Counted from the stretch's first letter, positions 11,760 to 54,362 are shown. The stretch: 64,000 nt of DNA from IMGVR_UViG_3300034072_000758:310001-374000; one strand, 5' to 3'. Program-made: numbers and translations. The notes: generated by a model from the letters alone, not told the origin.

Positions 11760-11793
11760 AAAAGACCGGTGCTTTCGCATCGGTCTTTTTTTA
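11758..11793. terminator. Bidirectional intrinsic terminator
   Basis: AAAAAAGACCGGTGC-TTTC-GCATCGGTCTTTTTT. Confidence 0.85.
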
Positions 11794-11794
11794 T

Positions 11795-12630
11795 GAAACC
11801 CTGAGACTAGAGGCTTCGTAACCGTCTTTCGCATGGATTATGATCCGCTTGCGGCGAACTTTCCCAGCTTATCCACGATACCCTTGCGGTATATCGTATC
11901 GGCTAATGTCGCAACTTATAGAGCGCTTGCTGCGGCGCTTACCCACGTGACTTACTCGGCACTTCCCAAATCGCCGAAACCCGCTAAGGTTCCATTTGGA
12001 CAGCATGACCCGTCCTACGACTCTTCCTTTACCAACACATCCGAGCTTTGCGGCCCATCAGTGACCCGATTCCTTGCGGTCAGGTGTTAGACATTTTGTA
12101 GTCACGCAGAGAGGTAGACTTTGCGTTTTTAATTCGAAGCAGGAATTGAACCTGCGACATATGGTATGGAAAACCATTGCTCTACCAAACTGAGCTATTC
12201 GCAACTTACGAAGACGTGCCACCTCTGTTGCTTCATGGCTTTCACCACAAAATACAACACGCCTAGTACCTTTCTCACCGCTAAGTGATACTCAATCTTG
12301 ATACAGGACCGAAACCCCACATCAATCCTAACCGCCCTTGGCCGCTAAACCTCGAACTAATTAGATACCCGTTAAATATCACGCGGGAATGGTTTGCGTG
12401 TTTGGCAGGGCTTGCGGACCCCTTTATGCTACTCCATGCTTTCACAGAGGAAGCAACACTACCACCTTTCGGTGACCAAACCCATTCATCGCGTTAGTTC
12501 CTATCGTTTGGCAATAGAAACGTCTCTCGACTATTTCGGGCTTGCTTGGTTATACTGTATTGCTACAGCGGGACTATGTAAGCTTCATCCCTTTCAGCTA
12601 GTTGCCTAGCTTTATCGTCCCAAGCGACAA
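11795..12630 (-). ncRNA. Large structured ncRNA of about 835 nt, probably GOLLD RNA
   Basis: No credible ORF; own TTGACT-N17-TATATT promoter (12664-12636) and terminator; many GCAA/GAAA/GAGA-capped hairpins on the minus strand; embedded tRNA-like domain. GOLLD assignment rests on size, architecture and recalled motifs, not a covariance-model search. Confidence 0.7.
12132..12204 (-). tRNA. tRNA-Gly(TCC)-like domain embedded in the large ncRNA, with degenerate acceptor stem
   Basis: D arm GCTC-AGTTTGGTA-GAGC, anticodon arm ATGGT-TTTCCAT-ACCAT, T arm GCAGG-TTCAATT-CCTGC; only 4 bp of acceptor stem, no CCA. Confidence 0.7.
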
Positions 12631-12872
12631 ATGTGAATATATATAAGTTGGATTCTGTAGTCAACATAAAAAGAATTATTTTTGAACTTTTTTTGAAGTT
12701 ATCCACAGGTTCTCAAATTCCACAGTATTGATGTATAAATCGCATTTTTACGGATTTTTATATAGTATTCGGTCATTTTTTCAGAAAAATAACAGTTTAA
12801 ATCATAAAAACCATTCTAAATGCTAAATAATATCGATACGCTTTACCCTAAATTATCAAAGGAGATTTTTTG

Positions 12873-22921: not shown

Positions 22922-22962
22922 GCTATTGACATTGGGTATAGAGGTAGCTTATAAATACATCA

Positions 22963-23292
22963 TCACTGTTTGACGACTGTGTAATAGGCTTGGTAAGACG
23001 GGAGTTCGACTCTCCCCGCCTCCACCATTGAATACATTAGTTGCTAGGTAGCCCCTAGTACGGAATATAGGATTGATCATCCTTAGCAGGTTCGAATCCT
23101 GCCCGAATGTGTTCTATTATGGGGGCGTTTTGGTTTCGATTATCGGCTGACGGACAGGAATAGGTGACGGTAAGAAACGACCGACCAATCAGTTCAAATT
23201 CATACTTGCCAACGACAACGTTGACATGAAGGACATGGCGCTCGCCGCCTAATCCATTCGGGGCTTGAGAGAGCCTAGCAACAGAATCTCTC
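22963..23292 (+). ncRNA. ssrA: Circularly permuted two-piece tmRNA (alphaproteobacterial type), tag ANDNVDMKDMALAA
   Basis: Acceptor piece ends GACGGGAGTTCGACTCTCCCCGCCTCCACCA (23027); coding piece starts GGGGGCG (23121) with G3.U70; tag 23208-23252; GGGC..GAGAGA-GCCT-AGCAACAGAA-TCTCTC pseudoknot; TTGACA and TATAAATA promoter at 22926-22957. Confidence 0.93.
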
Positions 23293-23293
23293 G

Positions 23294-23399
23294 TTCTATC
23301 TACAGAGTCCGGCCCCACAAGGGAAAGGCGTACAGACGGTTATATTGTTAGATACAGAACTTCACTTCGGTGCCTTCTGTGTGGCCATGTAACCTAGAA
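23294..23399 (+). ncRNA. Candidate structured RNA co-transcribed after tmRNA
   Basis: Nested stems TTCTA/TAGAA, TACA/TGTA, GGCC/GGCC enclosing ACAGAA/TTCTGT with a C(UUCG)G loop; no ORF; lies upstream of the terminator. Confidence 0.45.
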
Positions 23400-35578: not shown

Positions 35579-35579
35579 G

Positions 35580-35652
35580 TGCCGGTTGCAGGAATCGAAC
35601 CCGCGACATCTTGTTTACAAAACAAGTGCTCTACCAACTGAGCTAAACCGGC
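35580..35652 (-). tRNA. tRNA-Thr(TGT), no encoded CCA
   Basis: Full cloverleaf; anticodon arm CTTGT-TTTGTAA-ACAAG. Confidence 0.93.
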
Positions 35653-35661
35653 GTGTAAGTA

Positions 35662-35728
35662 GCAAACTAATCTAACAGCTTTATCATGCAAGGGTTGGTT
35701 TTAGAAGGAAGCACGTTAATGCGTTTGC
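35662..35728 (-). ncRNA. Small structured RNA motif, copy 1 (5' of tRNA-Thr)
   Basis: Closing stem GCAAAC/GTTTGC; same core, TGATA-AAGC-TGTTA; TAAATA at 35741-35736. Confidence 0.6.
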
Positions 35729-35796
35729 GTGATTATATTTATCAAAAAGAAAATGTAGCGTCAATTAAAATCGACTTTTATCCACATTTTCTTAGA

Positions 35797-36183
35797 TCAA
35801 CGGTAAACCAGTTCCTTTTGGTCACGTTCGAGGATGACCGTAGTACGACATGGCATACGCACACCGTCTTGATTTTCGTCGGTCAAAAGGAACATTCGGT
35901 GAAGTTTCACTCCGATACCAGCCATGTAGGTGGTGACCGATTCCAAATAAGAACCTTCGACCCCACCAAAAGTGATCTTATAGTCCCTGAGACGATCAAG
36001 ACCCTTGGGGAGAAAAACTTCGTGATTGAAAACCCCCAGATCATATCCGAGAACATGAAGGGCGAAATTCTTCTTGGTTTCCATTTCGGAAATCACAGCT
36101 TCAATCGCTTTGAGGTTCATGTCCTCAAAGTTTTCATGGCGACGTGATGTAGAAATGTCGATGGCGAGTAGATAATGCTTCAT
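35797..36183 (-). CDS. Small VWA-like protein
   Basis: LLAIDISTS (DxSxS) and FLLTD MIDAS-like motifs. Confidence 0.55.
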   Translation of the reverse strand: MKHYLLAIDISTSRRHENFEDMNLKAIEAVISEMETKKNFALHVLGYDLGVFNHEVFLPKGLDRLRDYKITFGGVEGSYLESVTTYMAGIGVKLHRMFLLTDENQDGVRMPCRTTVILERDQKELVYR

Positions 36184-36223
36184 TATATTGAAGGCCGTGG
36201 AAATTAATCCACGGCCATATCCC

Positions 36224-37387
36224 TTAGTTGAACTCGGTGGCGTTTTTACGCAGGATGTAGTCTGGGGAGACCCACTTCCCGATTTTCCGGCCACGCAGGA
36301 GCGACCGGCCTTCGGTCACCGTCTTGATAACGATGCCTTCCCGAACGTGGATGCCTGACAGCGTATCCTTGCCGTCGCGCACGGCTTCCAGTGCCGCCAG
36401 ATCGTATTGGCCACGATACAGGACCGGGGCGACCGGAATACCCAGCTTCGCCGCCAGAGCTTCGAAAACCTCATAAGATACGAACTCGTACCCGATTTGG
36501 ATGTCGAAGATGTAGAGCGTGGGCTTCTTGAAGCCGTAGGTCAGGTCTTGGATACCTTCGCCGAAGATTTCACCGAAGACACGCACCGGCTGACCGTACT
36601 CGTCCGAGATAGCCTTGATCAGTTCACCGAAGCCGTTTTCGACCAGCGGCTTGAGCATCCGAACATAGACGTTCTTGAGCGCGTTGGCTTCGTTATCCTT
36701 GAAGACCAGCCCTTGTGCCGCCATACCCTTCGAGCCGACATACAGATTGCCGTCGAAGAACAGTTCGTCGTTATTCAGGCCGGGGACATAACCGATCTGA
36801 ACGTGAGTACCGTGAAGCTTTTCAGTCGCCACGACTTCATCCGACGAATCGAAAGTATCCGGGTAATTCTGAACGCTTTCGAAATCGTACTTGTGGGTAT
36901 TGCCCGAAATATTACAAACATCGCCCGCAAAGTTCGTAGGGACGGGTGGTTCGTACTTGGTGATACCAAGGAACTCGGCCACGTTGTCGCCTTCCAGAAC
37001 GGTCAGAATATGTTCGCCGTTCGGGCTTTCGATCACGTCCGAAACTTCGCCGCATCCCATATCGTATTTCGAAATGGGATACAGGACGCCTTGCGAGAAG
37101 ATGCCACGCAGACGCTTGGCCTTGACACGATCACCCTTCTTACCGGCGAGGAAGCCGACATTCTTTTCATGGTCCCAGAAGTCCATGAAGCGCAGAACAT
37201 CTTCGGGAAGAACGGCGGCTTCGGGAATGTAGGCTACGAGATCGCCCGCCTGATAGCGGTGAGAGCCATCTTCCAGCTTACCAGAAATACACAGAAAGCC
37301 CTTGATTTGGATGATCGACAGACGATCCGCATCCGGGTGATGATCGACAGAGAGAATCTTGGTCACTTCGACCGCAAAACTTGACAT
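36224..37387 (-). CDS. RNA ligase (DRB0094/Rnl5 family) with N-terminal OB domain
   Basis: HPDADRL, RLRGIFSQG, motif I EKLHGT, FGEIFG.GIQ, FDI, motif IV EGIVIK, K.VS..Y. Confidence 0.9.
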   Translation of the reverse strand: MSSFAVEVTKILSVDHHPDADRLSIIQIKGFLCISGKLEDGSHRYQAGDLVAYIPEAAVLPEDVLRFMDFWDHEKNVGFLAGKKGDRVKAKRLRGIFSQGVLYPISKYDMGCGEVSDVIESPNGEHILTVLEGDNVAEFLGITKYEPPVPTNFAGDVCNISGNTHKYDFESVQNYPDTFDSSDEVVATEKLHGTHVQIGYVPGLNNDELFFDGNLYVGSKGMAAQGLVFKDNEANALKNVYVRMLKPLVENGFGELIKAISDEYGQPVRVFGEIFGEGIQDLTYGFKKPTLYIFDIQIGYEFVSYEVFEALAAKLGIPVAPVLYRGQYDLAALEAVRDGKDTLSGIHVREGIVIKTVTEGRSLLRGRKIGKWVSPDYILRKNATEFN

Positions 37388-37450
37388 ATTTTATATCCTT
37401 TCTCATTACGTATATTCTCTTATAGCATCAAACTAAGTATTGTCAACACA

Positions 37451-37732
37451 TCACTGCGTAATTTCGTATAACTTTAGTTGAACATTCTCCAACTCGGATT
37501 TAGAACAACCGAGGTTTTTACAGGCATGTTTTATACAAGATTCGGCGATTTCGTCCGCAGTCCGAATACGACCAAAATCTTTACGATAGGTCGAAATAGA
37601 TAATTCGGAACTATCTACGTACTTTCGTCCTTTATATTCACAAGTGAAGTGAAATTGCTTGGTCGAACTTTTGGGCGGAATCTTGGGTGCTGATTTTTCG
37701 CCCCTCACATATTTCATAAGCTGTTGTATCAT
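37451..37732 (-). CDS. Hypothetical protein
   Basis: ORF with AAGGTG SD. Confidence 0.55.
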   Translation of the reverse strand: MIQQLMKYVRGEKSAPKIPPKSSTKQFHFTCEYKGRKYVDSSELSISTYRKDFGRIRTADEIAESCIKHACKNLGCSKSELENVQLKLYEITQ

Positions 37733-37760
37733 TTTAAATCACCTTCTGTTCCTTTGATTA

Positions 37761-38147
37761 TTGCGGTGCAAAAGGTATTCCATCTGTGAAAAATATATGA
37801 TAGGAAATCGTATGCTCACCATAGTCAATGATATGAAAGATAACGAGGAAGTTGCCGGGGCATTGGACCGGATGTACGATACCATATGGAATAAGTATAC
37901 CGAAACTTCGTGCTCAAATCGATGTCATGCTAGATTATTAGTTCCTTACAGCTTAGGTGATTATTCTATAGTCTTTTACGGCCCCACGTCAGACATCGGT
38001 AAAATATTATGGAGAGATTTGGGAATTGAAGTCGTCATGACACAACCAAAACATTCGGTTTCGCACGTAATTTTAAGGACATATATGGAAAAAAGTAAAG
38101 AAGACTTGGAAGAGGATTTCATAGTATTTCTTTTGTCTTTAACGTAA
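37761..38147 (+). CDS. Hypothetical protein (start uncertain)
   Basis: ORF. Confidence 0.5.
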   Translation: MRCKRYSICEKYMIGNRMLTIVNDMKDNEEVAGALDRMYDTIWNKYTETSCSNRCHARLLVPYSLGDYSIVFYGPTSDIGKILWRDLGIEVVMTQPKHSVSHVILRTYMEKSKEDLEEDFIVFLLSLT

Positions 38148-38201
38148 CTTGACAAATATCAAACATATTATATGATGATCTTGAACTGAGGGAGACAAAA
38201 T

Positions 38202-38447
38202 ATGCGAATCACGATAAACAATATCAACAAAGCTCTTGCTGATGCTGGGATCAACGCCGAACTCATCAAGGGTAAGGGTTATTTCTATTTCTTCGGCGAT
38301 GATGTTGATACCTGTAACACCACCTCAGTCTACGTATATCGCCTGACTTCATTCACTATCGATCAGTGGGTCAGGGAAGCTACTAATCTGAAAGCCGAAC
38401 ACGAGCGTAGCCGTTCATTCTTACTGGATGATGCGGCGATACTGTAA
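38202..38447 (+). CDS. Hypothetical early protein
   Basis: TTGACA..TATGAT promoter, GGGAG SD. Confidence 0.7.
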   Translation: MRITINNINKALADAGINAELIKGKGYFYFFGDDVDTCNTTSVYVYRLTSFTIDQWVREATNLKAEHERSRSFLLDDAAIL

Positions 38448-38451
38448 AAGA

Positions 38452-38613
38452 TTAAGTCTGGATGCGCCACTTTCCATTCGGATCGCGGACCACTTTTCCT
38501 TTTCCACCGGCTTGCTCAAGCTCTTGAGATAACCGAACCAGTTCAGCATAGCCGCCTACTTTACGGGCGGCTGATGCGACAGCTTGCTGTTCCTGTTTGG
38601 TGGTGACGATCAT
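38452..38613 (-). CDS. Small hypothetical protein (53 aa), not in the ORF track
   Basis: MIVTTKQEQQAVASAARKVGGYAELVR...DPNGKWRIQT. Confidence 0.5.
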   Translation of the reverse strand: MIVTTKQEQQAVASAARKVGGYAELVRLSQELEQAGGKGKVVRDPNGKWRIQT

Positions 38614-38629
38614 CGGATTTCTTGGAAAT

Positions 38630-38703
38630 TGGAGCGGGTAGCGAGAATCGAACTCGCACGATCAGCATGGCAAGCTGACAGGCTACCACTACATCATACC
38701 CGC
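38630..38703 (-). tRNA. tRNA-Gly(GCC) with CCA
   Basis: GCGGGTA...TCAGC-TTGCCAT-GCTGA...TACCCGC-T-CCA. Confidence 0.93.
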
Positions 38704-38705
38704 GT

Positions 38706-38799
38706 AGCGGGGAATGCTTCTGTTGCCAAGTGCATCCCCAAAACTCCGGTTAGCGACAATTAAGCCGCCAGAGCCAAGACTACGTTATCGTTGTCAGTT
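38706..38799 (-). ncRNA. tmRNA-like fragment lacking the tRNA-like domain (tag frame DNDNVVLALAA* plus pseudoknot)
   Basis: Tag 38795-38760; GAGT..GGGGATGC-ACTT-GGCAACAGAA-GCATTCCC pseudoknot with the same architecture as in the main tmRNA; TAAATA at 38810-38805. Confidence 0.7.
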
Positions 38800-38842
38800 G
38801 ATTATATTTATCATAGACAAATATCAAACGCAACTAAAAAGT

Positions 38843-39214
38843 CTAATTTCTTTGACCACCATCAAGAATCAGATGAAAGAAAAAATCCTCCAACTCTTCT
38901 TCGGATTTCCAATTACGAATCTTATAACTAACGATGTCCCAATTATCCCAATCTTCGCTGGTTCGGTACAGCTTACCGTAACTTTGCCATTCTCCGCCCT
39001 TATGAGGCCCATAGGTGATGCTGATCACAAAGAACTCGTGGACAGTAAAAGTAAACCGGGTAAGACTGTGAATGTGCTCGTATATAGGTTTCTTGGAAGT
39101 CTTATGGTATCGGGCCATAATACGATATTCTTTATCGTCTACTGACAATAGATACCCATTTGGATACACATTCGTTTCCAATAGAATACCAGCAATGGCC
39201 TTGGTAATAATCAT
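38843..39214 (-). CDS. Hypothetical protein
   Basis: Coupled ORF. Confidence 0.6.
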   Translation of the reverse strand: MIITKAIAGILLETNVYPNGYLLSVDDKEYRIMARYHKTSKKPIYEHIHSLTRFTFTVHEFFVISITYGPHKGGEWQSYGKLYRTSEDWDNWDIVSYKIRNWKSEEELEDFFFHLILDGGQRN

Positions 39215-39633
39215 ACCAACATTCTAGCAGTAACTAGAAAATCGTCAAGACCTTCATAGCTCTTGGTAGTTGTGATCATACAAATTCTTCTAACGAGTTC
39301 ACGATGATCCGTAAGAATAATGTATAGGGCGTCTTTTCCGAGGTTCGCCCACTCCATGTGTAAATGGATTGAGAATTTGAATTTACCCGGAGAACTAATA
39401 TCCAATCGCCCGGTATATTTGTGATTATATGGTTTGATGTAATTCATCACCAAATCACCATTTGGCGTCTTTAAGACCCGGCGTCTGGAATCACGATCTC
39501 GAATTACATTACCGTATGGAGAGACGGGTAGTAAATCATTGTACAATTTGATCATGGCGCGGGCCAAATCAATATCACCGGGGTTCAACTCGAATAACTC
39601 ATCACCATCTTTATCCAGTTGATTGATACTCAT
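39211..39633 (-). CDS. Hypothetical protein
   Basis: GAGGGG SD right after tRNA-Ser. Confidence 0.6.
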   Translation of the reverse strand: MSINQLDKDGDELFELNPGDIDLARAMIKLYNDLLPVSPYGNVIRDRDSRRRVLKTPNGDLVMNYIKPYNHKYTGRLDISSPGKFKFSIHLHMEWANLGKDALYIILTDHRELVRRICMITTTKSYEGLDDFLVTARMLV

Positions 39634-39645
39634 AGTAAACCCCTC

Positions 39646-39735
39646 TGGCGGAAGCGGTGGGATTCGAACCCACGGAGGACTTTCACCCTCGCAGCTTTAG
39701 CAAAGCTGTGCTATCGACCACTCAGCCACGCTTCC
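39646..39735 (-). tRNA. tRNA-Ser(GCT) with CCA
   Basis: CAGCT-TTGCTAA-AGCTG, long variable arm, G73. Confidence 0.93.
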
Positions 39736-39737
39736 AT

Positions 39738-39926
39738 TTAAAAGTCGTTATTCAACGACTTCTGTTCTGTTGTCTCATACTTGTAGTTCTTTTTCAACCA
39801 GTCCCGACATATTTTCATATGCCAGTCCCGTTGATTATACGCCTTATCACTACTCAGTTCCACATAATCACTTGCGATATATTGGATAAGCTGTTCGGCA
39901 GTCAATTGATCTGTGTACTCACTCAT
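39738..39926 (-). CDS. Small hypothetical protein in the tRNA operon
   Basis: ORF between tRNAs. Confidence 0.55.
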   Translation of the reverse strand: MSEYTDQLTAEQLIQYIASDYVELSSDKAYNQRDWHMKICRDWLKKNYKYETTEQKSLNNDF

Positions 39927-39938
39927 GGACGTATCGTA

Positions 39939-40160
39939 TCATGTTAAGTCAGATTTTTCAATTTTTAATATAAGCAGTATTTTTTCATCATCGGTTAAGC
40001 TCTCAGCCATACTAATTTCCTCATATACTGCTGGACAACCGATACGAAGGGACGTTACTTCATCAAGCATAAGTTCGAACGTAAGTGTACCTCGCTCAAT
40101 TCCACTTACGTAGACTTGAATTAACATACACCAAGCTTTGAATATTTGCTCATTAGTCAT
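39939..40160 (-). CDS. Small hypothetical protein in the tRNA operon
   Basis: MTNEQIF...; ATG overlaps the CCA end of tRNA-Cys. Confidence 0.5.
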   Translation of the reverse strand: MTNEQIFKAWCMLIQVYVSGIERGTLTFELMLDEVTSLRIGCPAVYEEISMAESLTDDEKILLILKIEKSDLT

Positions 40161-40234
40161 GGAGTTCCCGATAGGATTCGAACCTACATAAGACGGGGTT
40201 GCAATCCGCCGCATAGCCTTTCTGCCACAGGAAC
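40160..40234 (-). tRNA. tRNA-Cys(GCA) with CCA
   Basis: GCGGA-TTGCAAC-CCCGT, U73. Confidence 0.9.
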
Positions 40235-40253
40235 ATAACCGGATTATACCGGG

Positions 40254-40342
40254 CGGACAATGGGGGATTCGAACCCCCGGAGGACATTACTGCCCTCACT
40301 CGCTTTCCAAGCGAGCGCGATAGACCGCTCTGCCAACTGTCC
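40254..40342 (-). tRNA. tRNA-Ser(GGA)
   Basis: CTCGC-TTGGAAA-GCGAG, long variable arm, G73 followed by CCC. Confidence 0.92.
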
Positions 40343-40600
40343 TTACTTTTGCCATATATGAGACTGTTCATCAACCTTTACCGGAAAGGTATGAACAGTC
40401 GTGCGAAAAAGAAAGTCCGATCCCATCTGACCAACAAGTCGATCAGTAAATGCTTCTGGGGTATAGTGATCGTTTACCCCAGCTAGGATCGCCGTCTTCA
40501 ATATGGCTTCGCATTCGTTGCTATCATCAAACTTATCCATATCGACAAACCATAAACGGCTATTCCGATCATTATAAGTTTCAACAACAGCATATATCAT
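40343..40600 (-). CDS. Hypothetical protein in the tRNA operon
   Basis: Coupled to the Nudix gene. Confidence 0.6.
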   Translation of the reverse strand: MIYAVVETYNDRNSRLWFVDMDKFDDSNECEAILKTAILAGVNDHYTPEAFTDRLVGQMGSDFLFRTTVHTFPVKVDEQSHIWQK

Positions 40601-41097
40601 TTTTGCCTTTCGAACCAGCTTTTAACCACATCGGTATGAGACCCGAAGCAAAGTTCTTCCGGTTCCAAAATGGCTCGGATTGCTGGCACTTCATTGGTTG
40701 GAACGAAGTCTTTCAAAACTTGTGCCATCGGAATAGGCGTCTTAGCTTCGCAAAAGGCCATCATATTACGACCGTTGTTGTATGAACTTATCAGACGAAC
40801 ATCAACCGGGTCAATAACCAGTCCAGTTTCTTCCACAAGCTCACGTACCGCAGCATGTTCGATAGAAGCGTCAGAAAGCTCTTGGAAGCCACCTACGAGC
40901 GCCCAGCCGTCCTTACAAGGTTGAATGCCTCGTTGGGCTACCAGAAGGCCCACAGAGCCTAATGGGAACGATACCGGTAAGAGAAGTACAGCAACCCCGA
41001 TTGGGTTGATGAATGTGATGTTGCCGCAGCTTGAACAAGCCTTGGGGTACTCAGTCGCGGTATGCTCGGTGCCGCAGAATTTACAGAACTTGTCCAT
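40597..41097 (-). CDS. Zinc-ribbon Nudix hydrolase
   Basis: FCKFCG..CSSCG..F.NP; WALVGGF...AAVRELVEETG. Confidence 0.88.
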   Translation of the reverse strand: MDKFCKFCGTEHTATEYPKACSSCGNITFINPIGVAVLLLPVSFPLGSVGLLVAQRGIQPCKDGWALVGGFQELSDASIEHAAVRELVEETGLVIDPVDVRLISSYNNGRNMMAFCEAKTPIPMAQVLKDFVPTNEVPAIRAILEPEELCFGSHTDVVKSWFERQK

Positions 41098-41122
41098 TTA
41101 TATCGCCAGAATTTTTACGGAG

Positions 41123-41207
41123 CGGAAGCGGTGGGATTCGAACCCACGGAACCTTACGGTTCGGAAGTTTTCAAGACTTCTGGGATAAACCTCTCCCCCA
41201 CGCTTCC
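41123..41207 (-). tRNA. tRNA-Ser(TGA), no CCA
   Basis: GAAGT-CTTGAAA-ACTTC, long variable arm, G73. Confidence 0.92.
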
Positions 41208-41214
41208 TTAAATA

Positions 41215-41421
41215 TTAGAAATGTCGTCTTCTGACTTTTCTTACTATAGAATCAACCGCTTTTTCCTCAGTCGGTTGGCCATTCACTATTATAACTACGG
41301 TGTCAGCCTGTCCACCTAAGTCAGTGACCGCCTCTTCCGCTTCGTATAATGCTTCTTTTGATGTTTCGGCGTTAATTTTAGATTTCGAACGAAAGACGTA
41401 TTCTACTTCAAATTCAGCCAT
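41215..41421 (-). CDS. Small hypothetical protein in the tRNA operon
   Basis: MAEFEVEYVF... after GAAGG. Confidence 0.55.
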   Translation of the reverse strand: MAEFEVEYVFRSKSKINAETSKEALYEAEEAVTDLGGQADTVVIIVNGQPTEEKAVDSIVRKVRRRHF

Positions 41422-41496
41422 AACACGTAGACCTTCAACACGATTATTACTCTTTTTACGTCTAACACGATGGTAAAGACTGGTCAATTTATTTTG

Positions 41497-41586
41497 TGGC
41501 GGATGGTGAGGGATTTGAACCCCCGGTTCCTTTCGGAACGCCAGTTTTCGAAACTGGTGCAATCAGCCGGACTCTGCCAACCATCC
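41497..41586 (-). tRNA. tRNA-Ser(CGA) with CCA
   Basis: CCAGT-TTCGAAA-ACTGG, long variable arm, G73. Confidence 0.93.
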
Positions 41587-41587
41587 G

Positions 41588-41662
41588 TGGACTATGATGG
41601 AATCGAACCATCGCTATCGTTGAGTTACAACGACGACCTATCCTTTACAGGTCTGATAGCCC
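41588..41662 (-). tRNA. Atypical tRNA-like RNA: Ala-type acceptor (G3.U70, A73) with nominal AAC anticodon
   Basis: GGGCTAT/ATAGTCC-A; 5-bp D stem GACCT/AGGTC; TCGTT-GTAACTC-AACGA; canonical T arm. Confidence 0.7.
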
Positions 41663-41673
41663 TTAATTTTAAT

Positions 41674-41762
41674 TGGGGGACGGGTGGGATTCGAACCCAC
41701 GGAACCTTCTACAAGACCCTCCCGCGTCAATCGGGACACCTTAAGCCACTCAGTCACCGTCC
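41674..41762 (-). tRNA. Atypical tRNA-Ser(TGA)-like gene (6-bp acceptor, C discriminator, CCA)
   Basis: GGACGG/CCGTCC-C-CCA; TCCCG-ATTGACG-CGGGA; long variable arm. Confidence 0.65.
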
Positions 41763-41767
41763 ATCAA

Positions 41768-41980
41768 TTAAACCGTCTGTTCTTCGATCAAAGACATATG
41801 CTTCCTGATCCAACGCATAAAGAACAATCCTTTATCCTTGGTCAAGAAGCGGGCAGTCCCGCAATCGGAGATCGGAACCGGAAACTCAAACCCATCTTCG
41901 CAGCGATAGATCAAGTTGCCGTCCTGATAGTGAACGAAGTTTACTTCGCCTTTTACTCTTGTTTTAATGTCAGCCATCAC
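41768..41980 (-). CDS. Small hypothetical protein in the tRNA operon
   Basis: ..GNLIYRCEDGFEFPVPISDCGTARFL..DK..FFMRWIRK; AAGGG SD. Confidence 0.7.
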   Translation of the reverse strand: MMADIKTRVKGEVNFVHYQDGNLIYRCEDGFEFPVPISDCGTARFLTKDKGLFFMRWIRKHMSLIEEQTV

Positions 41981-42000
41981 TTTACCCTTTCATTCAGTGA

Positions 42001-42084
42001 TGGTGTGTCGTGATGGATTCGAACCACCGTGCCTTTCGGATGGGGGTTACAACCCCACGCAATCAACCGCTCTGCCAACGACAC
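42001..42084 (-). tRNA. tRNA-Tyr(GTA), copy 2, with CCA
   Basis: TGGGG-TTGTAAC-CCCCA, long variable arm, A73. Confidence 0.9.
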
Positions 42085-42096
42085 ATAAAGGATTAA

Positions 42097-42220
42097 TCGA
42101 CCCCTCGCCTTCGGGCTTTTACCGCTGGTCATTAGGCTACCGGAGAGGAGTTTCCGTAGCCTCAGCTTACTATGTGCTCACCCCGTTTGGAGGCATACCC
42201 CTACTAGGTTAAAGTAAGCA
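42097..42220 (-). ncRNA. Candidate structured RNA between the two tRNA-Tyr genes
   Basis: Stems GCTTACT/AGTAAGC, AGGCTAC-GGA/TCC-GTAGCCT, GACC/GGTC; no ORF. Confidence 0.45.
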
Positions 42221-42227
42221 CTTCATT

Positions 42228-42312
42228 TGGTGTATGGTGCTGGATTCGAACCAGCGCGCCTTTCGGAACAGATTTACAGTCTGTCGGTATCGACCAACTC
42301 ACCCAACCATAC
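42228..42312 (-). tRNA. tRNA-Tyr(GTA), copy 1, with CCA
   Basis: ACAGA-CTGTAAA-TCTGT, long variable arm, A73. Confidence 0.92.
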
Positions 42313-42313
42313 G

Positions 42314-42385
42314 TACTCGGTAATGGAATCGAACCATTATCTTCGGAGCCACAATCCGACGCTCTTACCGTTGAGCTAACCAAGC
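42314..42385 (-). tRNA. tRNA-His(GTG), alphaproteobacterial type without G-1 (G1.U72, A73)
   Basis: U at -1; GCTTGGT/ACCGAGT-A; TCGGA-TTGTGGC-TCCGA. Confidence 0.9.
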
Positions 42386-42404
42386 ATAGTTATAAGATTC
42401 ACAA

Positions 42405-42416
42405 TGTAAAAGAACA
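42405..42416 (-). promoter_or_regulatory. boxA-like antitermination element
   Basis: TGTTCTTTTACA versus rrn boxA TGCTCTTTAACA, preceded by a hairpin (42415-42466). Confidence 0.5.
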
Positions 42417-42467
42417 TGTCTCATACACGATACAAGAAGAGGCTTCTTGCTTCATTAATGAGACATT

Positions 42468-42544
42468 TGGGGTGACCAACGGGATTCGAACCCGCGCTTG
42501 GAGATTCACAGTCTCTCGTGCTAACCGCTAACACTATGGCCACC
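42468..42544 (-). tRNA. tRNA-His(GTG), canonical G-1:C73 type with CCA
   Basis: G-GTGGCCA/TGGTCAC-C-CCA; anticodon loop CTGTGAA. Confidence 0.92.
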
Positions 42545-42554
42545 ATAAAGATCG

Positions 42555-43167
42555 CTACAGAGCTAACATCAGTCGATCAACTCCAATCGCCCAACCAATA
42601 CCTTCTGAGTATCGGCCACCACCGGCAATCTGTTTTTGTGCTCCAAGTTTGGAACACTCTGCTTCGAAACCTTCTTCAACATAATAGGTCAAACCGCGCT
42701 TAACCGAGTCCGTGAATGAGTATTCGACGCCAAGCTTGTCTAAACACAACTTCAAAAGCCTCTTGGCCTCTTCTGTCGAATTGTCAACTTCACCGAGGAT
42801 TTCCACACCAAATTGGGTGAACTCTCGATAACGACCAGCTTGAGGTCGTTCGTAGCGATAGCACCGGGAGACGTAGAAAATCCTCTTGGACTTACTTGTC
42901 TTTGACCAGTTATCCCGCCAAAGTTCTTGGACTAAGCCGGTGACTTCGGGGATCAAACATACCGGACGGTTTGCCTTATCCTCGAAAGCCCACATTTGAT
43001 TGATGATCTCAGACCCCGCCTTGTCGATGAACGTTTGTTGTTCCCACAAGGCTGGAAGAATCACTTCCTCAAATCCAGCTTCAATGAAGAGACCCCCTAA
43101 GAGCCTCGATTACACGGACGTAGGACTTAGCTTCGTCCCCTTCCAAAATTCTCGTACCTCGTAACAT
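42555..43167 (-). CDS. hisS: Minimal catalytic-domain-only histidyl-tRNA synthetase (about 203 aa); needs a +1 shift near 43093-43101
   Basis: MLRGTR..; GFEEVILP (motif 1), LIPEVT, YRYERPQAGRYREFTQFGVE (motif 2), RGLTYY, GGGRY, GWAIGVDRL (motif 3); no insertion or anticodon-binding domain; frame break at CTT AGG GGG T. Confidence 0.85.
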
Positions 43168-43183
43168 TCCATTCTCCAAAAAC

Positions 43184-43208
43184 AAAAAACCCGCCAAGAC
43201 TGGCGGGC
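43184..43208 (-). terminator. Attenuator terminator T2
   Basis: CCCGCCA-GTCT-TGGCGGG-TTTTTT. Confidence 0.85.
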
Positions 43209-43211
43209 ATT

Positions 43212-43239
43212 AAAAAACCCGCCTAATCGGAGCGGGTTT
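43212..43239 (-). terminator. Attenuator terminator T1
   Basis: AAACCCGCT-CCGATTA-GGCGGGTTT-TTT. Confidence 0.85.
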
Positions 43240-43277
43240 AGAAGCTTCTATGATTTTCAGTTAATCATATAGTCGCG

Positions 43278-43340
43278 TCAAAACCCACCCTTGCTAGAGT
43301 GCGAATAAGAGCAGCTATGTGAATACGACATGAAAGTCAT
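43278..43340 (-). CDS. Attenuator leader peptide MTFMSYSHSCSYSHSSKGGF
   Basis: AAAGGA SD; ATG ACT TTC ATG TCG TAT TCA CAT AGC TGC TCT TAT TCG CAC TCT AGC AAG GGT GGG TTT TGA; 3' end GGGTGGGTTT complementary to the T1 left arm. Confidence 0.85.
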   Translation of the reverse strand: MTFMSYSHSCSYSHSSKGGF

Positions 43341-43420
43341 TGTAGCAGTTCCTTTGTTACCAGCGGGGGTGTGATAGGGCGCACCCTATAACGACGACTT
43401 TTTCCCTCGCCATCTTTTTC

Positions 43421-43450
43421 TATTTAGCATCTTTCGCAAAAACGTGTCAA
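43421..43450 (-). promoter_or_regulatory. Promoter of the leader-hisS-tRNA operon
   Basis: TTGACA (43450-43445)-N18-TAAATA (43426-43421), also readable as TTGACA-N16-GCTAAATA. Confidence 0.7.
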
Positions 43451-43463
43451 TTTATTTTTTAAA

Positions 43464-43766
43464 TTAATTTTTGCGGGCGTTGTAGACGAATCTCCCAACC
43501 TCTTTATTATTATGAGAAGCGATAACAATGGTCGTCGCAAACGTGTCAATATCGGAGTTATCATCAACCGGTGGCTGAGACATTGTTAACTTATATCCAT
43601 ATTTTTTAGATAAATCGACAAACTCTTTCAATTGCTGACTAGAATTTCGTCCAGCAATACCACCAAAATCAAGACGCAGATAATTATTACTTGGGTTGAT
43701 GTCTTGAACCGAAGCCTCATTCAACACCATCTTGTTTTGAATTTCTCTATACCATTCGTTGTCCAT
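43464..43766 (-). CDS. Hypothetical late protein
   Basis: TAAATA-N5-ATG; VLNE motif. Confidence 0.65.
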   Translation of the reverse strand: MDNEWYREIQNKMVLNEASVQDINPSNNYLRLDFGGIAGRNSSQQLKEFVDLSKKYGYKLTMSQPPVDDNSDIDTFATTIVIASHNNKEVGRFVYNARKN

Positions 43767-43814
43767 GCTTGTATTTATTTGACTTTTAGTAAAGTTGTAT
43801 GTATAACAATATAC

Positions 43815-44570
43815 ATGAAAAGATTACTGATCCTCAGCCTTGTGCTGGCCTCCTTCTCTACACCTTCCTATGCGGCTCAAAAGAAGCCGTTGCCTAATGC
43901 TGTCTGTGCGCCACTAATCAAACATGTCAGCGTCATTCCGGGGCAAATGATTTGTCGTGCTGGGTACGTGGCGATCTATGACGCTCGCAACCGTATTCCA
44001 GAAATGGTGATATACAATAATGACCGAGCAAAGCTGTCAGCTTGTGGGAAACGTACTGATCGGTTCCAGCGAGACGAGAGTGTCAGTGATGGTGCTCTCC
44101 CAGCAGACTACACCGGGACAGGATATGATCGCGGTCACATGGCTCCGAACAATGACATGATTTACGATCCAGTCATTGAAGAAGAGAGCTTCATCATGAC
44201 CAACATTGTTCCCCAAAAGCCAACCCTCAATCGTGGCATCTGGAAGGAACTGGAAACTCATGCTCGTGAAAAATCATACGCGGTGGGTAATCTAACAATT
44301 ATCACCGGGGTCATCTATCGCCCGAATAATGCTCGCCTCAAGGGGCGGGTTCTGATCCCAGATGGCTTCTATAAAATATTGGTCGATCATAAAGCTAAGA
44401 CGACCGAGACATATATCATGTATCAGAACGACAAGACCGGGCCTATTTCATCCTATCTGAGCACTCGAAAAGAAGTCCAGCGCTTGACCGGCCATCGTTT
44501 TAACTTGGACGGTTATCAAGACGCCAAGTGGACAATCAGTTATCGAAACATCCACAAGGAGTGTAAATAA
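43815..44570 (+). CDS. Secreted DNA/RNA non-specific endonuclease (NucA/EndoG family)
   Basis: Signal peptide MKRLLILSLVLASFSTPSYA; DY...GYDRGHMAP, SF.MTNIVPQ...LNRGIWKELE, IPDGFYKI. Confidence 0.9.
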   Translation: MKRLLILSLVLASFSTPSYAAQKKPLPNAVCAPLIKHVSVIPGQMICRAGYVAIYDARNRIPEMVIYNNDRAKLSACGKRTDRFQRDESVSDGALPADYTGTGYDRGHMAPNNDMIYDPVIEEESFIMTNIVPQKPTLNRGIWKELETHAREKSYAVGNLTIITGVIYRPNNARLKGRVLIPDGFYKILVDHKAKTTETYIMYQNDKTGPISSYLSTRKEVQRLTGHRFNLDGYQDAKWTISYRNIHKECK

Positions 44571-47429: not shown

Positions 47430-48089
47430 ATGGCTACTTTTGAAGAAGTAAAAGAAAAAGCAATAGCAGGAAACGTCAAAGCACAGATCGCTTTGGGTGA
47501 ATATCACCTTAATAATGAGGAATATCATTTTGCTAAACACTGGTTTATCCAAGCATCCGAAAATGACGCACGTGGTCTTTTAGGGTTAGCGACGACTTAT
47601 GAAATGATGAAAGACCCGGCTGAGGCCGTGAAGGTATATCAACAGATGTATGAAAAATATCAGGATAAGAAAGCCCTCGATATGATCATCCTTCATGAAG
47701 AAACTGCCAAGCAATATCTAAATGCGTTAACATGGCTCATGAAGGGCGGTATTAAAGATTATTCCGATGAACACAAGGCCACTAAATTATCATTCATGTC
47801 TGTATGGGATTCTGGATCGTATAACGAACAAAAATTTGTATCCGTTCTGATCTTACTAGGTCTCACATCGATTATGGGGCTATTCGAGTTCAAGGAAATG
47901 GATGAACAGGAGTTCTATCAGTTGCTTGCTGATTTAATTGGAAATGTATACGGCATTAAGGACAAGAACAAAGCACCAGAATACATCAGTGATCATATAA
48001 TTAAGAATAACCATATGCCCGTGTATGGCTACTATCTTAAAGGAGAAATGGGTGACTATACTAGGATGATGATAAAATTGATCAATTAA
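47430..48089 (+). CDS. Sel1/TPR-like repeat protein
   Basis: AIAGNVKAQIALG..., A.HWF.QA, LGLA..YE......EAV..Y. Confidence 0.65.
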   Translation: MATFEEVKEKAIAGNVKAQIALGEYHLNNEEYHFAKHWFIQASENDARGLLGLATTYEMMKDPAEAVKVYQQMYEKYQDKKALDMIILHEETAKQYLNALTWLMKGGIKDYSDEHKATKLSFMSVWDSGSYNEQKFVSVLILLGLTSIMGLFEFKEMDEQEFYQLLADLIGNVYGIKDKNKAPEYISDHIIKNNHMPVYGYYLKGEMGDYTRMMIKLIN

Positions 48090-48099
48090 TGAATCATCT

Positions 48100-48733
48100 A
48101 ATTCAGTTACACCTATGTGGTCTTTATCCCCCTGTCCCTCAGAATAATATTTCGGAAGTCCGAAATCTCAGAATCAAAATAGATTCCGAGTCCCTTCTGA
48201 GGGACAGAGGATGGAAACACTATGGTCACACCACAGGGGTAACATTCGCGCGCTAATGGTGTTTGCCGCACCGCGACTCAGGAGGATGCCATTTCCCCAA
48301 GTCTTCACTACGCCCATCCCTTGACATTCTACTTGGTTTGTCCGAACTCGATGTTTCGGGCCATAAGGAACAATACAGTGAGTTTGAGAATCAGTGACTA
48401 TGTATCTATATTACTATATGGCTGGTCCCTTGTAGAAGCAGACATCGGTTAAAGATAAAAGGGTTTTTTCCTTTCATCTTAGCATACGCATACATGTGTT
48501 ACTCATGTCCTACGTATTGGCCAGAGGCGGAATAACTTCACCGCATAACCTCTTTTGGTTTTATCCGTTTTCATGAACCGAAGTTCAAAGGGTTAACCGG
48601 ATTATTAGTCCGATCTCCTTACGGCTGACCTTACCTCAAGCTTAGGGTCATTCGTCCCCTCTTGCGTTTTCGCCCGATGAAAGGCGAAGTAATCATCTGG
48701 TCATATATGGCCACGGAAGCAAAACTCCGTGTT
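48100..48733 (-). ncRNA. Unassigned highly structured non-coding region of about 630 nt (candidate large ncRNA)
   Basis: More than 10 hairpins; G.U pairs and a C(UUCG)G loop favour the minus strand; TTGACT-N18-TACCAT promoter at 48769-48740; no ORF. Confidence 0.55.
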
Positions 48734-48938
48734 AACGTCATGGTAAGTGATTCAAAAACAAAGAGTCAAATTATTTTTTATTTTACTCAGAGGAATCTTG
48801 GACCAGTATTTATAATTGCTAATACTATATTCGATCTTTACAATACTCATAAACGATACTTCGAGAAATCATGTAGAAAATTATTGATTTCTGTGCGAAA
48901 ATATACGAAAATGGTTGCGTCTATGACCAAGGTGGAAG

Positions 48939-49184
48939 ATGATTATCTACAGAGTGCTATGTAAGGAAGACCCTTCCAAGGTTGATCGATACATATATAG
49001 CAAGAAAGACGCATTCGATGCCGCTAAAAAAGCGGCAAAGATTTTCGGCTGCGCGGTCGAAGTCACGAGATATAGCGTTACCGAAACACTTACCCCCAAG
49101 CGTTTGAATATCTGCCTTCTAAATAGATTTGGCTGGTGGGATGGTGAGCCGGAAGTTGTTCTTCAAATCTCAGCCAAAAAATAA
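48939..49184 (+). CDS. Hypothetical protein
   Basis: AAGGTGG SD. Confidence 0.65.
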   Translation: MIIYRVLCKEDPSKVDRYIYSKKDAFDAAKKAAKIFGCAVEVTRYSVTETLTPKRLNICLLNRFGWWDGEPEVVLQISAKK

Positions 49185-50182: not shown

Positions 50183-50638
50183 ATGTTTGGACTATTAAGT
50201 GTTTTAGGTTTCGCCAAGGATGCGTGGGCCTACGTAACCCAACACTGGAAGATGCTTCTTCTGGTGGGCGGGTTAATTGCCGTTCTGGTTGGAGTGACGG
50301 TCGGAGCCTACAATCTAGCCAAGGCTATGAGTAAGCAACAAATCGAAGCTATCAAGGAAGTATCGGAGAAGGCCGGACGAACCGAAGCCAATCTGAACAC
50401 CATGAAGGAAGCTCAAGCTCGTATGGAACAACAGATGACGGAGATCAATCGTCGTCTGGACGAGACTAACCAGCGCTTCGATGAAGTGCGTGTTGAGAAC
50501 CAAAAGGCTCAAAAGACCATCAATTCTTATGACGCCAAAGGTGTTGCTAAGACGCAAGGCCCGAAGGTGGTAGAAGATTGGGCCAACAAGACCAATAACG
50601 ATTTGTTCAAGGACGTTCAGAAGGAAGCAAATCAATGA
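50183..50638 (+). CDS. Putative inner-membrane spanin (Rz-like)
   Basis: N-terminal TM helix plus periplasmic coiled coil; overlaps a lipoprotein gene. Confidence 0.7.
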   Translation: MFGLLSVLGFAKDAWAYVTQHWKMLLLVGGLIAVLVGVTVGAYNLAKAMSKQQIEAIKEVSEKAGRTEANLNTMKEAQARMEQQMTEINRRLDETNQRFDEVRVENQKAQKTINSYDAKGVAKTQGPKVVEDWANKTNNDLFKDVQKEANQ

Positions 50639-52048: not shown

Positions 52049-52112
52049 TAATTGCGTTAAGAAAACATAAACCCTAATATAGGTTCCAGTGATCTTTATC
52101 AAGGAACCATTT

Positions 52113-54362
52113 ATGTCCATTTCTATTTTTAATGACGCAAAATCCAAAGCAATCGAGTTCGGCCACGAGTATATCACGCCTGAGCATGTGTTCGCCGCGT
52201 TGTTGAACAAAGAAGAAATCCAAAAGATGATTTCTTCGTTTGATATAGAACCACAACAAATCCAAGATGAACTGGAAGAATACCTCAAAGAGGCTTCGGT
52301 CCAGAACATTATCCCGGCCCTTCAATCGGATGGCCACTTGAAAGTTACTCGCGCTGTTGATAGATTACAGCGATTCGAAATCCTCATTTCCACGATTACG
52401 AATGGACAGTTGGACGACAACTTCTATCTGTTTTCCGCGATGTTCACCGACAACGACAGTTTCGTTTATTACCTTCTCAGCAAGTTCGGCGTGGAGAAGG
52501 CTCAGGTCGAGACCTACGTGAAGCGCTATTATGCCGTGAAGTTCTTCGATCATGACGAAAAGACTGGCGCTCCCGCGACCAAGGGTAAGAAAGAAGATAC
52601 CCCAAGCGAACTGGAAAAGTATGCGGTCAACCTCAACGAAAAAGCCAAAGAACTCAAAATCGATCCTCTGATCGGTCGAGAAAGCGAAGTCTATTCCATC
52701 ACGCAAATCATGGCGCGTTATAAGAAGAATAACGCCATGCTGATCGGTGAAGCTGGCGTCGGTAAGACAGCTATCGTGGAAGGTCTGGCTCTGAATATCG
52801 TCAATGGCAACGTGCCAGAATCCCTTCGTGATGCCACGATCTATGCTTTGGATATTGCCTCTCTGTTGGCTGGTACTCGTTTCCGTGGTGAATTTGAAGA
52901 ACGTGTCAAGCTGGTTCTGGAAGAACTCAAGCTCGATCCGAATGCGATCCTCTTCATTGACGAAATTCACATGATCCTTAGCGCCGGGGCATCGGGCGAC
53001 AACAACGTCAACGCGGCTAACCTGTTGAAGCCCGCCCTTGCCCGTGGTGATTTGCGTTGTATCGGTTCTACGACATATGAGGAATATCGTAAGTTTGTGG
53101 AAAAGGACAAGGCACTCGCGCGCCGCTTCAAGAAGCTGGATGTCAACGAACCTACGGTCGAAGACGCTAAGGCGATTTTGAAAGGCTCCAAGAGCTATTA
53201 CGAGACCTTCCACGGTCTGTACTTCGATGACGAAGCTCTGGATGCCGCTGTGGACCTCTCACATCGTTATGTGAAGGGTTTCCTGCCCGACAAGGCATTC
53301 GATCTGATTGATGACGCTGCGGCTCATATTAAGCTCTCTGGTAACCTTCGTAATCTGAATGTCGATGACATCGAGGCCGAAGTTTCCAAGACAGCCCGTA
53401 TTCCCCCGGCGACGGTATCGGAATCGGAAAATCAAAAGCTCGAAAATCTTGAAGGTGATCTTTTGGGCGAAATTTTCGGCCAAGATGCTGCGATCACCGA
53501 ATTGACCGATTCTATCATCATTTCCAGATCGGGATTGCGTGAACCCAATAAACCCGCTGCTGCCTATCTGTTTGCTGGACCAACCGGTGTCGGTAAGACC
53601 GAAGTAGCAAAGCAACTGGCTCGAACCCTTGGTATCGAACTAGTGCGTATGGACATGTCGGAATATATGGAAAAGCACTCGGTCTCTAAGTTGATCGGTG
53701 CTGGCCCCGGTTATGTCGGGTATGGTGAAGGCGGGAATGGATCGGGTAAACTGATCAACGCCATCGACACCACGCCACATTGCGTCCTTTTGATTGATGA
53801 AATCGAAAAGGCTCATGCTGATGTACAGAACATTTTCCTTCAAGTCATGGACAACGCTTCGTTGGAATCGTCTTCCGGTAAGAAAGTTGATTTCCAAAAT
53901 GTCATTATCATTATGACGACAAATGCCGGATCGGCCATCAGTGAGAAAAGCTCAATCGGCTTCGGGAACAGCACCAATACGGATAACTCCGGGGAACAAG
54001 ATAAGGCCATCAAGGCTATGTTCTCTCCTGAGTTCCGTAATCGTCTGGATGCGATCATTCGGTTCTCCGCTTTGGATGAACGCAACATGGTCAGCATTGC
54101 TAACAAATTCGTTGGTGAAATGATCTCTCAAGCCAAGGTTTCAAAGGGTGTGACGATTACGGTTGCTGATGAAGTGGTATCGTTCTTGGCTGTCAAGGGT
54201 TACGACCGCGCATATGGTGCTCGTCCTATGAAGCGCGCGATCACCGATTACATCAAGAAGCCTCTGGCGCGTCTTTTGTTGAAGGCAAAGGCTGGGGATC
54301 ATCTTCGTATCGAATTAAACGAAGTACCGGTAGTCAAGATTATCGAACAAATTGAGGCATAA
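52113..54362 (+). CDS. clpA: ATP-dependent Clp protease ATPase subunit ClpA
   Basis: HEYITPEH; two AAA modules ([16 protein letters not shown]); [16 protein letters not shown]; IGF loop; no ClpB middle domain. Confidence 0.93.

Follow-up and report, generated by a model that had tools for sequence, protein, structure and literature searches.

What is encoded in a gap of more than 800 nucleotides that lacks any credible reading frame, beside the clamp loader gene of a very large phage? We analysed a window of 64,000 nucleotides, corresponding to bases 310001-374000 of a 516,805-bp IMG/VR virus record (hereafter G000). The record has a direct terminal repeat that is an exact 127-bp overlap (1-127 and 516679-516805), typical of a circular assembly rather than of true phage ends, which gives a circular map of 516,678 bp. 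It is a megaphage whose clamp loader is at best 45-47% identical to those of jumbo phages such as PA5oct and Atu_ph07, and the public protein collection holds relatives on contigs of 0.5-0.64 Mb. The genome has more than 40 tRNA genes. Of these, 14 are in the window, all on the minus strand (35579-42543 and 12130-12205) and including several Ser, Tyr, and His duplicates, and at least 28 more lie in the other gaps scanned (G000 about 423-425, 429-432, and 477-480 kb). A reading made from the sequence alone had proposed that the gap holds a new large non-coding RNA on the minus strand or, alternatively, a transcription-primed replication origin.

We first asked whether the gap is truly non-coding. 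Between the ORF at 47430-48089(+), which encodes a TPR-like protein, and the ORF at 48939-49184(+), there is no credible coding frame. Plus-strand frame 2 (48089-48960) has only 5 stops in 299 codons, against 18-22 in the other frames, but its translation looks unlike a protein and is not conserved, and we take the low count as a side effect of the composition of the antisense strand of the RNA. Small ORFs in the sense of the RNA are not conserved either: the 47-codon ORF starting at 48317 is cut to 17 codons in the ortholog described below, and one paralog (c221) has no AUG at the aligned position (alignments read by eye). Other genes encoded near the element include a ClpB-like double AAA+ ATPase (52089-54362, +), a non-specific DNA/RNA endonuclease (43632-44570, +), and an Rz-like spanin (50183-50638, +).

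We then examined the structures listed by the sequence-only reading, and most of them hold. On the minus strand, the hairpins CACGGA/UCCGUG (48712-48731), UUCGCC/GGCGAA (48669-48688), GAAC-UUCG-GUUC, and AAGAUGAAAGG/CCUUUUAUCUU (48452-48480) are present and recur in the homologs with changed sequence but kept pairing. The fifth, UGACC/GGUCA, exists but competes with a better-supported helix that covaries (GGGG/CCCY) and is mismatched in two of five homologs, so it is probably not part of the native fold. The branched 3' domain is as had been described, with arms at 48129-48144 and 48195-48210 (16 nt, 94% complementary) carrying two daughter hairpins. The fold energy is lower than that of shuffled sequences on either strand (z-score about -3.7), and thus does not by itself reveal which strand is the sense one.

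The element matches no described RNA family. A search with the Rfam 15 models at the gathering thresholds found only tRNAs and a tmRNA elsewhere in the window, and at E-values up to 10 the element gave only noise hits of 11-18 bits. The paralogs and the ortholog, searched in the same way, also gave only noise, mostly miRNA-precursor models matching long hairpins. There was thus no match to the models of group I (RF00028) or group II introns, RNase P RNA, GOLLD, ROOL, OLE, HEARO, raiA, 6S, or SRP RNA. ARAGORN and Rfam place the tmRNA of the phage, a two-piece (circularly permuted) one of the alphaproteobacterial type, at 22922-23295(+) (97.5 bits for tmRNA_permuted and 72.3 bits for alpha_tmRNA), and find none here. 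Other long gaps have no ORF in our crude gene call, and some of them follow sigma70-like promoters (window 11760-12869, 37388-38201, and 43065-43631; G000 265914-266439, 273171-274505, and 475848-476700). The three latter were scanned and show no Rfam match and no similarity to the element. One of the three window gaps is presumably the first large element mentioned by the sequence-only reading.

To know if the element is conserved, we searched for homologs near relatives of the clamp loader. The closest clamp loader relative (P0003, 63% amino acid identity) lies on a 3-kb contig of the Logan collection (hereafter L083) with a gap of 742 nt upstream of the gene. This gap is homologous to the element (70% identity over about 480 nt by blastn) and lies in the same position, between a TPR-like gene and the clamp loader gene. 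The TPR-like proteins are only 23% identical and the clamp loader genes are 62% identical at the nucleotide level, whereas the core of the RNA (domain I) is about 77% identical. The alignment shows invariant blocks, including one 22-mer, separated by hairpins whose stems differ but still pair. The 3' domain keeps its shape, a helix of 16-19 bp with two daughter hairpins, with unrelated sequence. Indels between the two elements are not multiples of three. The GGA motifs of the element are not conserved in L083 (alignment read by eye), which led us to discard a role as a sponge of the CsrA/RsmA type. Closer clamp loader relatives at 61% and 57% identity (L082 and L084) have no such gap upstream.

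Contigs from other metagenomes carry near relatives of the locus, and their natural variants reveal the sense strand. In one of these (X5), the changes 48155 G>A and 48160 C>T are compensatory. The stem substitutions found in X5 and in another run (X7), i.e., 48166, 48472, 48474, 48515, and 48669 (all T>C) and 48521 (C>T), keep pairing only as G.U or A-U on the minus strand, because on the plus strand they would create or start from C.A mismatches. The wobble pairs of the window itself point the same way, as the sequence-only reading had noted, and so does the orientation of the promoter. The sense strand is therefore the minus strand, opposite to both neighbouring genes. The element also seems to be under purifying selection, since in X7 the piece 48399-48703 is about 95% identical to ours, while the pieces of the clamp loader gene are 81-89% identical.

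We used the window element and L083 to build a covariance model of domain I and searched the non-coding gaps of the genome. This uncovered three more diverged copies with full-length matches to the model, at G000 about 221148-221367(-) (37.6 bits, E 2e-9), 511859-512065(+) (31 bits, E 1.7e-7), and 89668-89902(+) (17.9 bits, E 1e-3). An nhmmer profile finds exactly these four copies and no more. We name them after their positions in kb: c090, c221, c358 (the copy in the window), and c512. The paralogs are about 55-68% identical to each other in the core, less than the ortholog pair, and the duplications therefore predate the split of the two phages. Further searches were negative or gave only chance hits. 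We found no match to the element or to two paralogs among GenBank phages (blastn), nor in 80 IMG/VR loci of clamp loader relatives (blastn and nhmmer). Pattern scans gave nothing or one chance hit inside a coding region in IMG/VR (L109), one chance hit in a JGI metagenome scan (L086), and three chance 18-mer hits in 185,579 species genomes (L087-L089). The covariance model found nothing in the records of 20 IMG/VR relatives, but this negative result is weak because the same route missed the true paralogs in the phage's own genome. Protein searches with the flanking TPR-like gene and with a gene encoding 337 amino acids next to c512 returned only the query itself.

The five RNAs (four copies and L083) share the same order of motifs and helices over 590-710 nt, and we now describe them from 5' to 3' using the coordinates of c358. 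The predicted RNA gene spans 48070-48735(-), with a 5' end inferred at about 48733 and a 3' end, also inferred, between about 48070 and 48105. It starts with hairpin H1 (48712-48731), found at the same place in all five members with different stem sequences. A conserved block follows (AUGAYCAGAUG..., 48687-48703), in which UGAYCAGAUG is invariant in all five. Its GAUG can pair with CAUC in the loop of the next hairpin, giving a possible pseudoknot that remains an inference because the residues never vary. Hairpin H2 (48669-48688) has conserved loop residues ACAUC. Hairpin H3 (GGGG...CCCY, 48644-48660) has a conserved loop and 3' strand (AACAUGACCC in the paralogs), and its outer pairs covary among the copies. 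Domain I (48431-48653) is a junction of five hairpins that the model closes with a weakly supported long-range helix (48626-48636 with 48436-48447). It contains the invariant 22-mer ending in ...UAACCGAUGUCUGCUUC, and the junction ends in CUAACCGAUKUCUG. Domain II (48340-48430) has a conserved CACUG, a variable hairpin, and CUCACUG, followed by a variable arm. Domain III (48236-48323) has GGAUK, a covarying hairpin of 7-9 bp whose loop MAUCC can pair with GGAUK (a candidate pseudoknot), a second covarying hairpin, and UGUUAYNCC; the stem sequences differ completely among the five members while the pairing is kept. The 3' domain (48106-48235) has a long helix (48129-48146 with 48195-48213) with a CCCCC/GGGGG base and daughter hairpins at 48149-48166 and 48167-48190. 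The conserved 3' tail GGGGGAUAAAGAC... (48106-48128), which reads GAUAAAGAC...AUGGUAAUA in the comparison of the five RNAs, pairs back to the region after UGUUAYNCC and closes the domain. Finally, a small A/U-rich hairpin without a U tract (48090-48105) is a candidate 3' end or weak terminator. Each of the four genomic copies has a small hairpin right after the tail, whereas the stretch of L083 that we used ends before this point. We found no canonical terminator, but an A/T-rich palindrome (48065-48098) overlaps the stop codon of the TPR-like gene and the 3' end of the RNA and could be a bidirectional terminator without U tracts.

The pairing in domain I is supported by strong covariation. 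In the alignment of the five sequences, 94.6% of the cells form standard pairs, against 30-39% when the partners are slid, 22 of 44 pairs change on both sides, and none of 500 shuffles reaches the observed values. There are 21 G.U cells in the model-aligned helices. These counts rest on five sequences, and they lean toward the structure because the alignment was fitted to the model. However, the size of the margin and the independent folds of single sequences make the conclusion safe. The long-range closing helix is the weakest part, with 83.7% of the cells paired and no double changes. In domain III, where MAFFT alignments are out of register by one column between copies, we rely on the individual folds.

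Each of the five genes carries the same unusual sigma70-like promoter: AAATTGACT, exactly 18 nt containing a GANTC site, and then TAYNNT, with an A/T-rich stretch upstream. In c358, the -35 hexamer TTGACT (48764-48769) is identical in all four copies and in L083 and is unchanged in the variants of X7 and X8. The -10 hexamer is TACCAT (48740-48745), and the other members have TATACT, TACACT, TACACT, and TACTAT at the same spacing. The GANTC site (GAATC, 48749-48753) lies at about -21 to -15, and four of the five promoters have another GANTC 6-8 nt upstream of the -35 hexamer. The other promoters are at G000 89526, 221472, and 511747, and at about 1140-1168 of L083. Copy c512 has four GAATC within 60 nt upstream. 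This composite form occurs nowhere else in the genome. Only 2 of about 84 other intergenic sigma70-like candidates have a GANTC in the spacer, and the site is under-represented genome-wide, at 0.51 of expectation. GANTC is the site of the CcrM methyltransferase of Alphaproteobacteria, which suggests that expression is tied to host CcrM-type adenine methylation, even if this control is an inference. We found neither a CcrM-like methyltransferase nor a GcrA gene in the phage.

These results make us confident that the element belongs to a genuine, selected family of structured RNA genes that is new to Rfam and to the literature we could search. They bear out the first proposal of the sequence-only reading. 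Our best explanation, which we regard as more likely than not, is that the four paralogs encode large RNAs of 600-700 nt acting in trans during infection, as a stable scaffold, RNP component, or ribozyme. Under this explanation, the host sigma70 RNA polymerase transcribes each copy as a separate unit, starting about 7 nt after the -10 hexamer and ending after the conserved tail, and the RNA folds into a compact tertiary structure in which many invariant residues sit in junctions and loops. The four long-separated paralogs would provide either dosage or specialised variants. The function is argued by analogy only, since no partner protein, target, or catalytic motif was identified, and the family is known from one complete genome, one 3-kb contig, and short fragments. 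There is also no clean transcript evidence. The only RNA library with a match (X3) has a single contig of 185 nt (48574-48758), with none of the flanking 3 kb, and one piece out of 3.2 kb is not significant. This contig overruns the predicted start by about 25 nt and could be carried-over DNA or a read-through transcript. A bolder possibility, which we regard as tentative, is that the paralogs encode a new class of large catalytic or self-assembling RNA, comparable in rank to RNase P RNA or the GOLLD and ROOL cages. The phage would keep them as four specialised variants, possibly as subunits of one hetero-oligomeric assembly, with expression gated by the GANTC methylation state of the host.

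How does the element compare with known large RNAs? GOLLD (RF01998) and ROOL (RF03087) are large ornate RNAs of phages and prophages that form RNA-only multimeric cages (PMC12286853). The element resembles them in its size class (about 600-800 nt), in being a phage-encoded stand-alone gene in a genome rich in tRNA genes, in its many covarying helices with invariant residues in junctions, and in its unknown biochemical function. It differs in lacking any sequence or structure match to either model and in having four diverged paralogs per genome, each with a dedicated GANTC-bearing promoter. Like bacterial RNase P RNA, it has a long-range helix enclosing a multi-helix domain and many invariant unpaired residues, and a genome carrying dozens of tRNA genes would have use for such an RNA. 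Yet it is about 250 nt longer, is present in four copies, matches no RNase P model, and seems to lack the universal P4 sequences. OLE RNA is also ornate, about 600 nt long, and acts as an RNP scaffold, but it belongs to Gram-positive extremophiles and is co-transcribed with partner protein genes. Here, there is no model match, and no conserved neighbouring gene exists across the four copies.

The main rival explanation is that the four elements are RNA-primed replication origins, which we regard as doubtful but not excluded. Each promoter would drive a structured pre-primer RNA, as with ColE1 RNA II or the R-loop origins oriF and oriG of T4, and the 3' part of the RNA (a conserved G run, then AUAAAGAC) would form a persistent hybrid and prime DNA synthesis. 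The copies sit at 89.9, 221.2, 358.4, and 512.1 kb, i.e., at gaps of 0.25, 0.27, 0.30, and 0.18 of the circular map, and the chance of spacing this even under random placement is about 0.02. Copies c358 and c512 lie within about 2 kb of minus-to-plus turns of the cumulative GC skew, and all four are within about 10 kb of gene-strand switch zones, though this reading is generous for c358. The spacing and the nearness to these zones fit a DNA-level role better than a plain RNA gene does. A dedicated promoter with GANTC sites would suit replication-linked control, and the length may be similar to that of ColE1 RNA II. T4 also has several such loci per genome. On the other hand, the global minimum of the GC skew (255 kb) and one strand-switch minimum (156 kb) have no copy, c221 sits in uniformly negative skew, and skew in phages largely follows the direction of transcription and is thus not independent evidence. 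The sequence-only reading had invoked the nearby clamp loader gene, but this argument is weak: c358 and its ortholog sit next to that gene, whereas the other three copies are not near replication genes. No conserved antisense promoter like that of RNA I exists, since the only plus-strand promoter-like site inside the element (48384-48412) is not kept in L083. We identified no shared motif in the 200 nt downstream of each copy, and whether an A/T-rich unwinding element lies there is unclear: these stretches are 61-67.5% A+T, against 54.9% genome-wide, with richest 40-mers of 72.5-82.5%. Finally, about 14 invariant motifs, several candidate pseudoknots, and a 3' tail that pairs back into the fold make up more structure than any known primer RNA needs.

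It is unlikely that the element acts in cis, as a giant 5' leader or riboswitch-like regulator of the downstream gene or as an antisense regulator of the convergent TPR-like gene. In c221 and c512 the RNA points toward a gene on the same strand and ends 11-76 nt before it, but in c358 and c090 the next gene is convergent. The downstream genes are unrelated to each other (ART-PolyVal, an unknown protein of 337 amino acids, a TPR-like protein, and an unknown protein of 213 amino acids), and conservation stops at the tail and does not reach into the neighbouring genes. The gene downstream of c512 has its own promoter-like site (TTGACA, then a TATAAA-like -10, read by eye), so the RNA looks like a separate unit. 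Three of the seven ART-PolyVal (ADP-ribosyltransferase) genes of the genome lie within 2 kb of c221 and c090 (G000 219888-220826(-), 222225-222839(-), and 90981-91565(+)). The chance of this is roughly 0.02, which is suggestive only. An EcoRV-like restriction endonuclease homolog (221456-222181(-)) lies next to c221, and a Ros/MucR-family regulator (88531-88992(-)) lies near c090.

The dispersed copies of a large structured RNA without an ORF could also be relics or non-autonomous members of a mobile element, such as an ORF-less group I or II intron, an IS-associated guide RNA, or a retroelement RNA, but this is improbable. No intron, omega-RNA (HEARO), or other mobile-element model matches, no copy interrupts a gene on its own strand, and every copy keeps its own promoter. 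No reverse transcriptase, TnpB/IscB, or recombinase was found among the neighbouring genes that were scanned, several of which have no family match. The divergence of the copies, and the conservation of the position of c358 in a phage whose clamp loader is only 63% identical, indicate that the duplications are old and fixed. A decayed or recoded protein-coding gene, suggested only by the few stops in plus-strand frame 2, is very unlikely because these stops are of all three kinds, no protein family or homolog was found, the indels against L083 are not in threes, the substitutions are compensatory in stems, and the paralogs share RNA motifs rather than reading frames.

Large RNAs with this much conserved structure are few, and historically most have turned out to be ribozymes or the cores of molecular machines. 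This family has four ancient paralogs per genome, a private promoter type, and a roughly even spacing around a half-megabase phage chromosome, an arrangement for which we could find no precedent in Rfam or in the searched literature. The GANTC sites, the Ros/MucR gene, and the alpha-type tmRNA point to an alphaproteobacterial host. If the RNA acts in trans, it adds a new class to the short list that includes GOLLD, ROOL, and OLE, with a built-in set of natural variants that would help structure work. If it marks origins, it would be the first case of structured-RNA-primed multi-origin replication in a phage. Either way, it gives a concrete handle on how megaphages organise infection.
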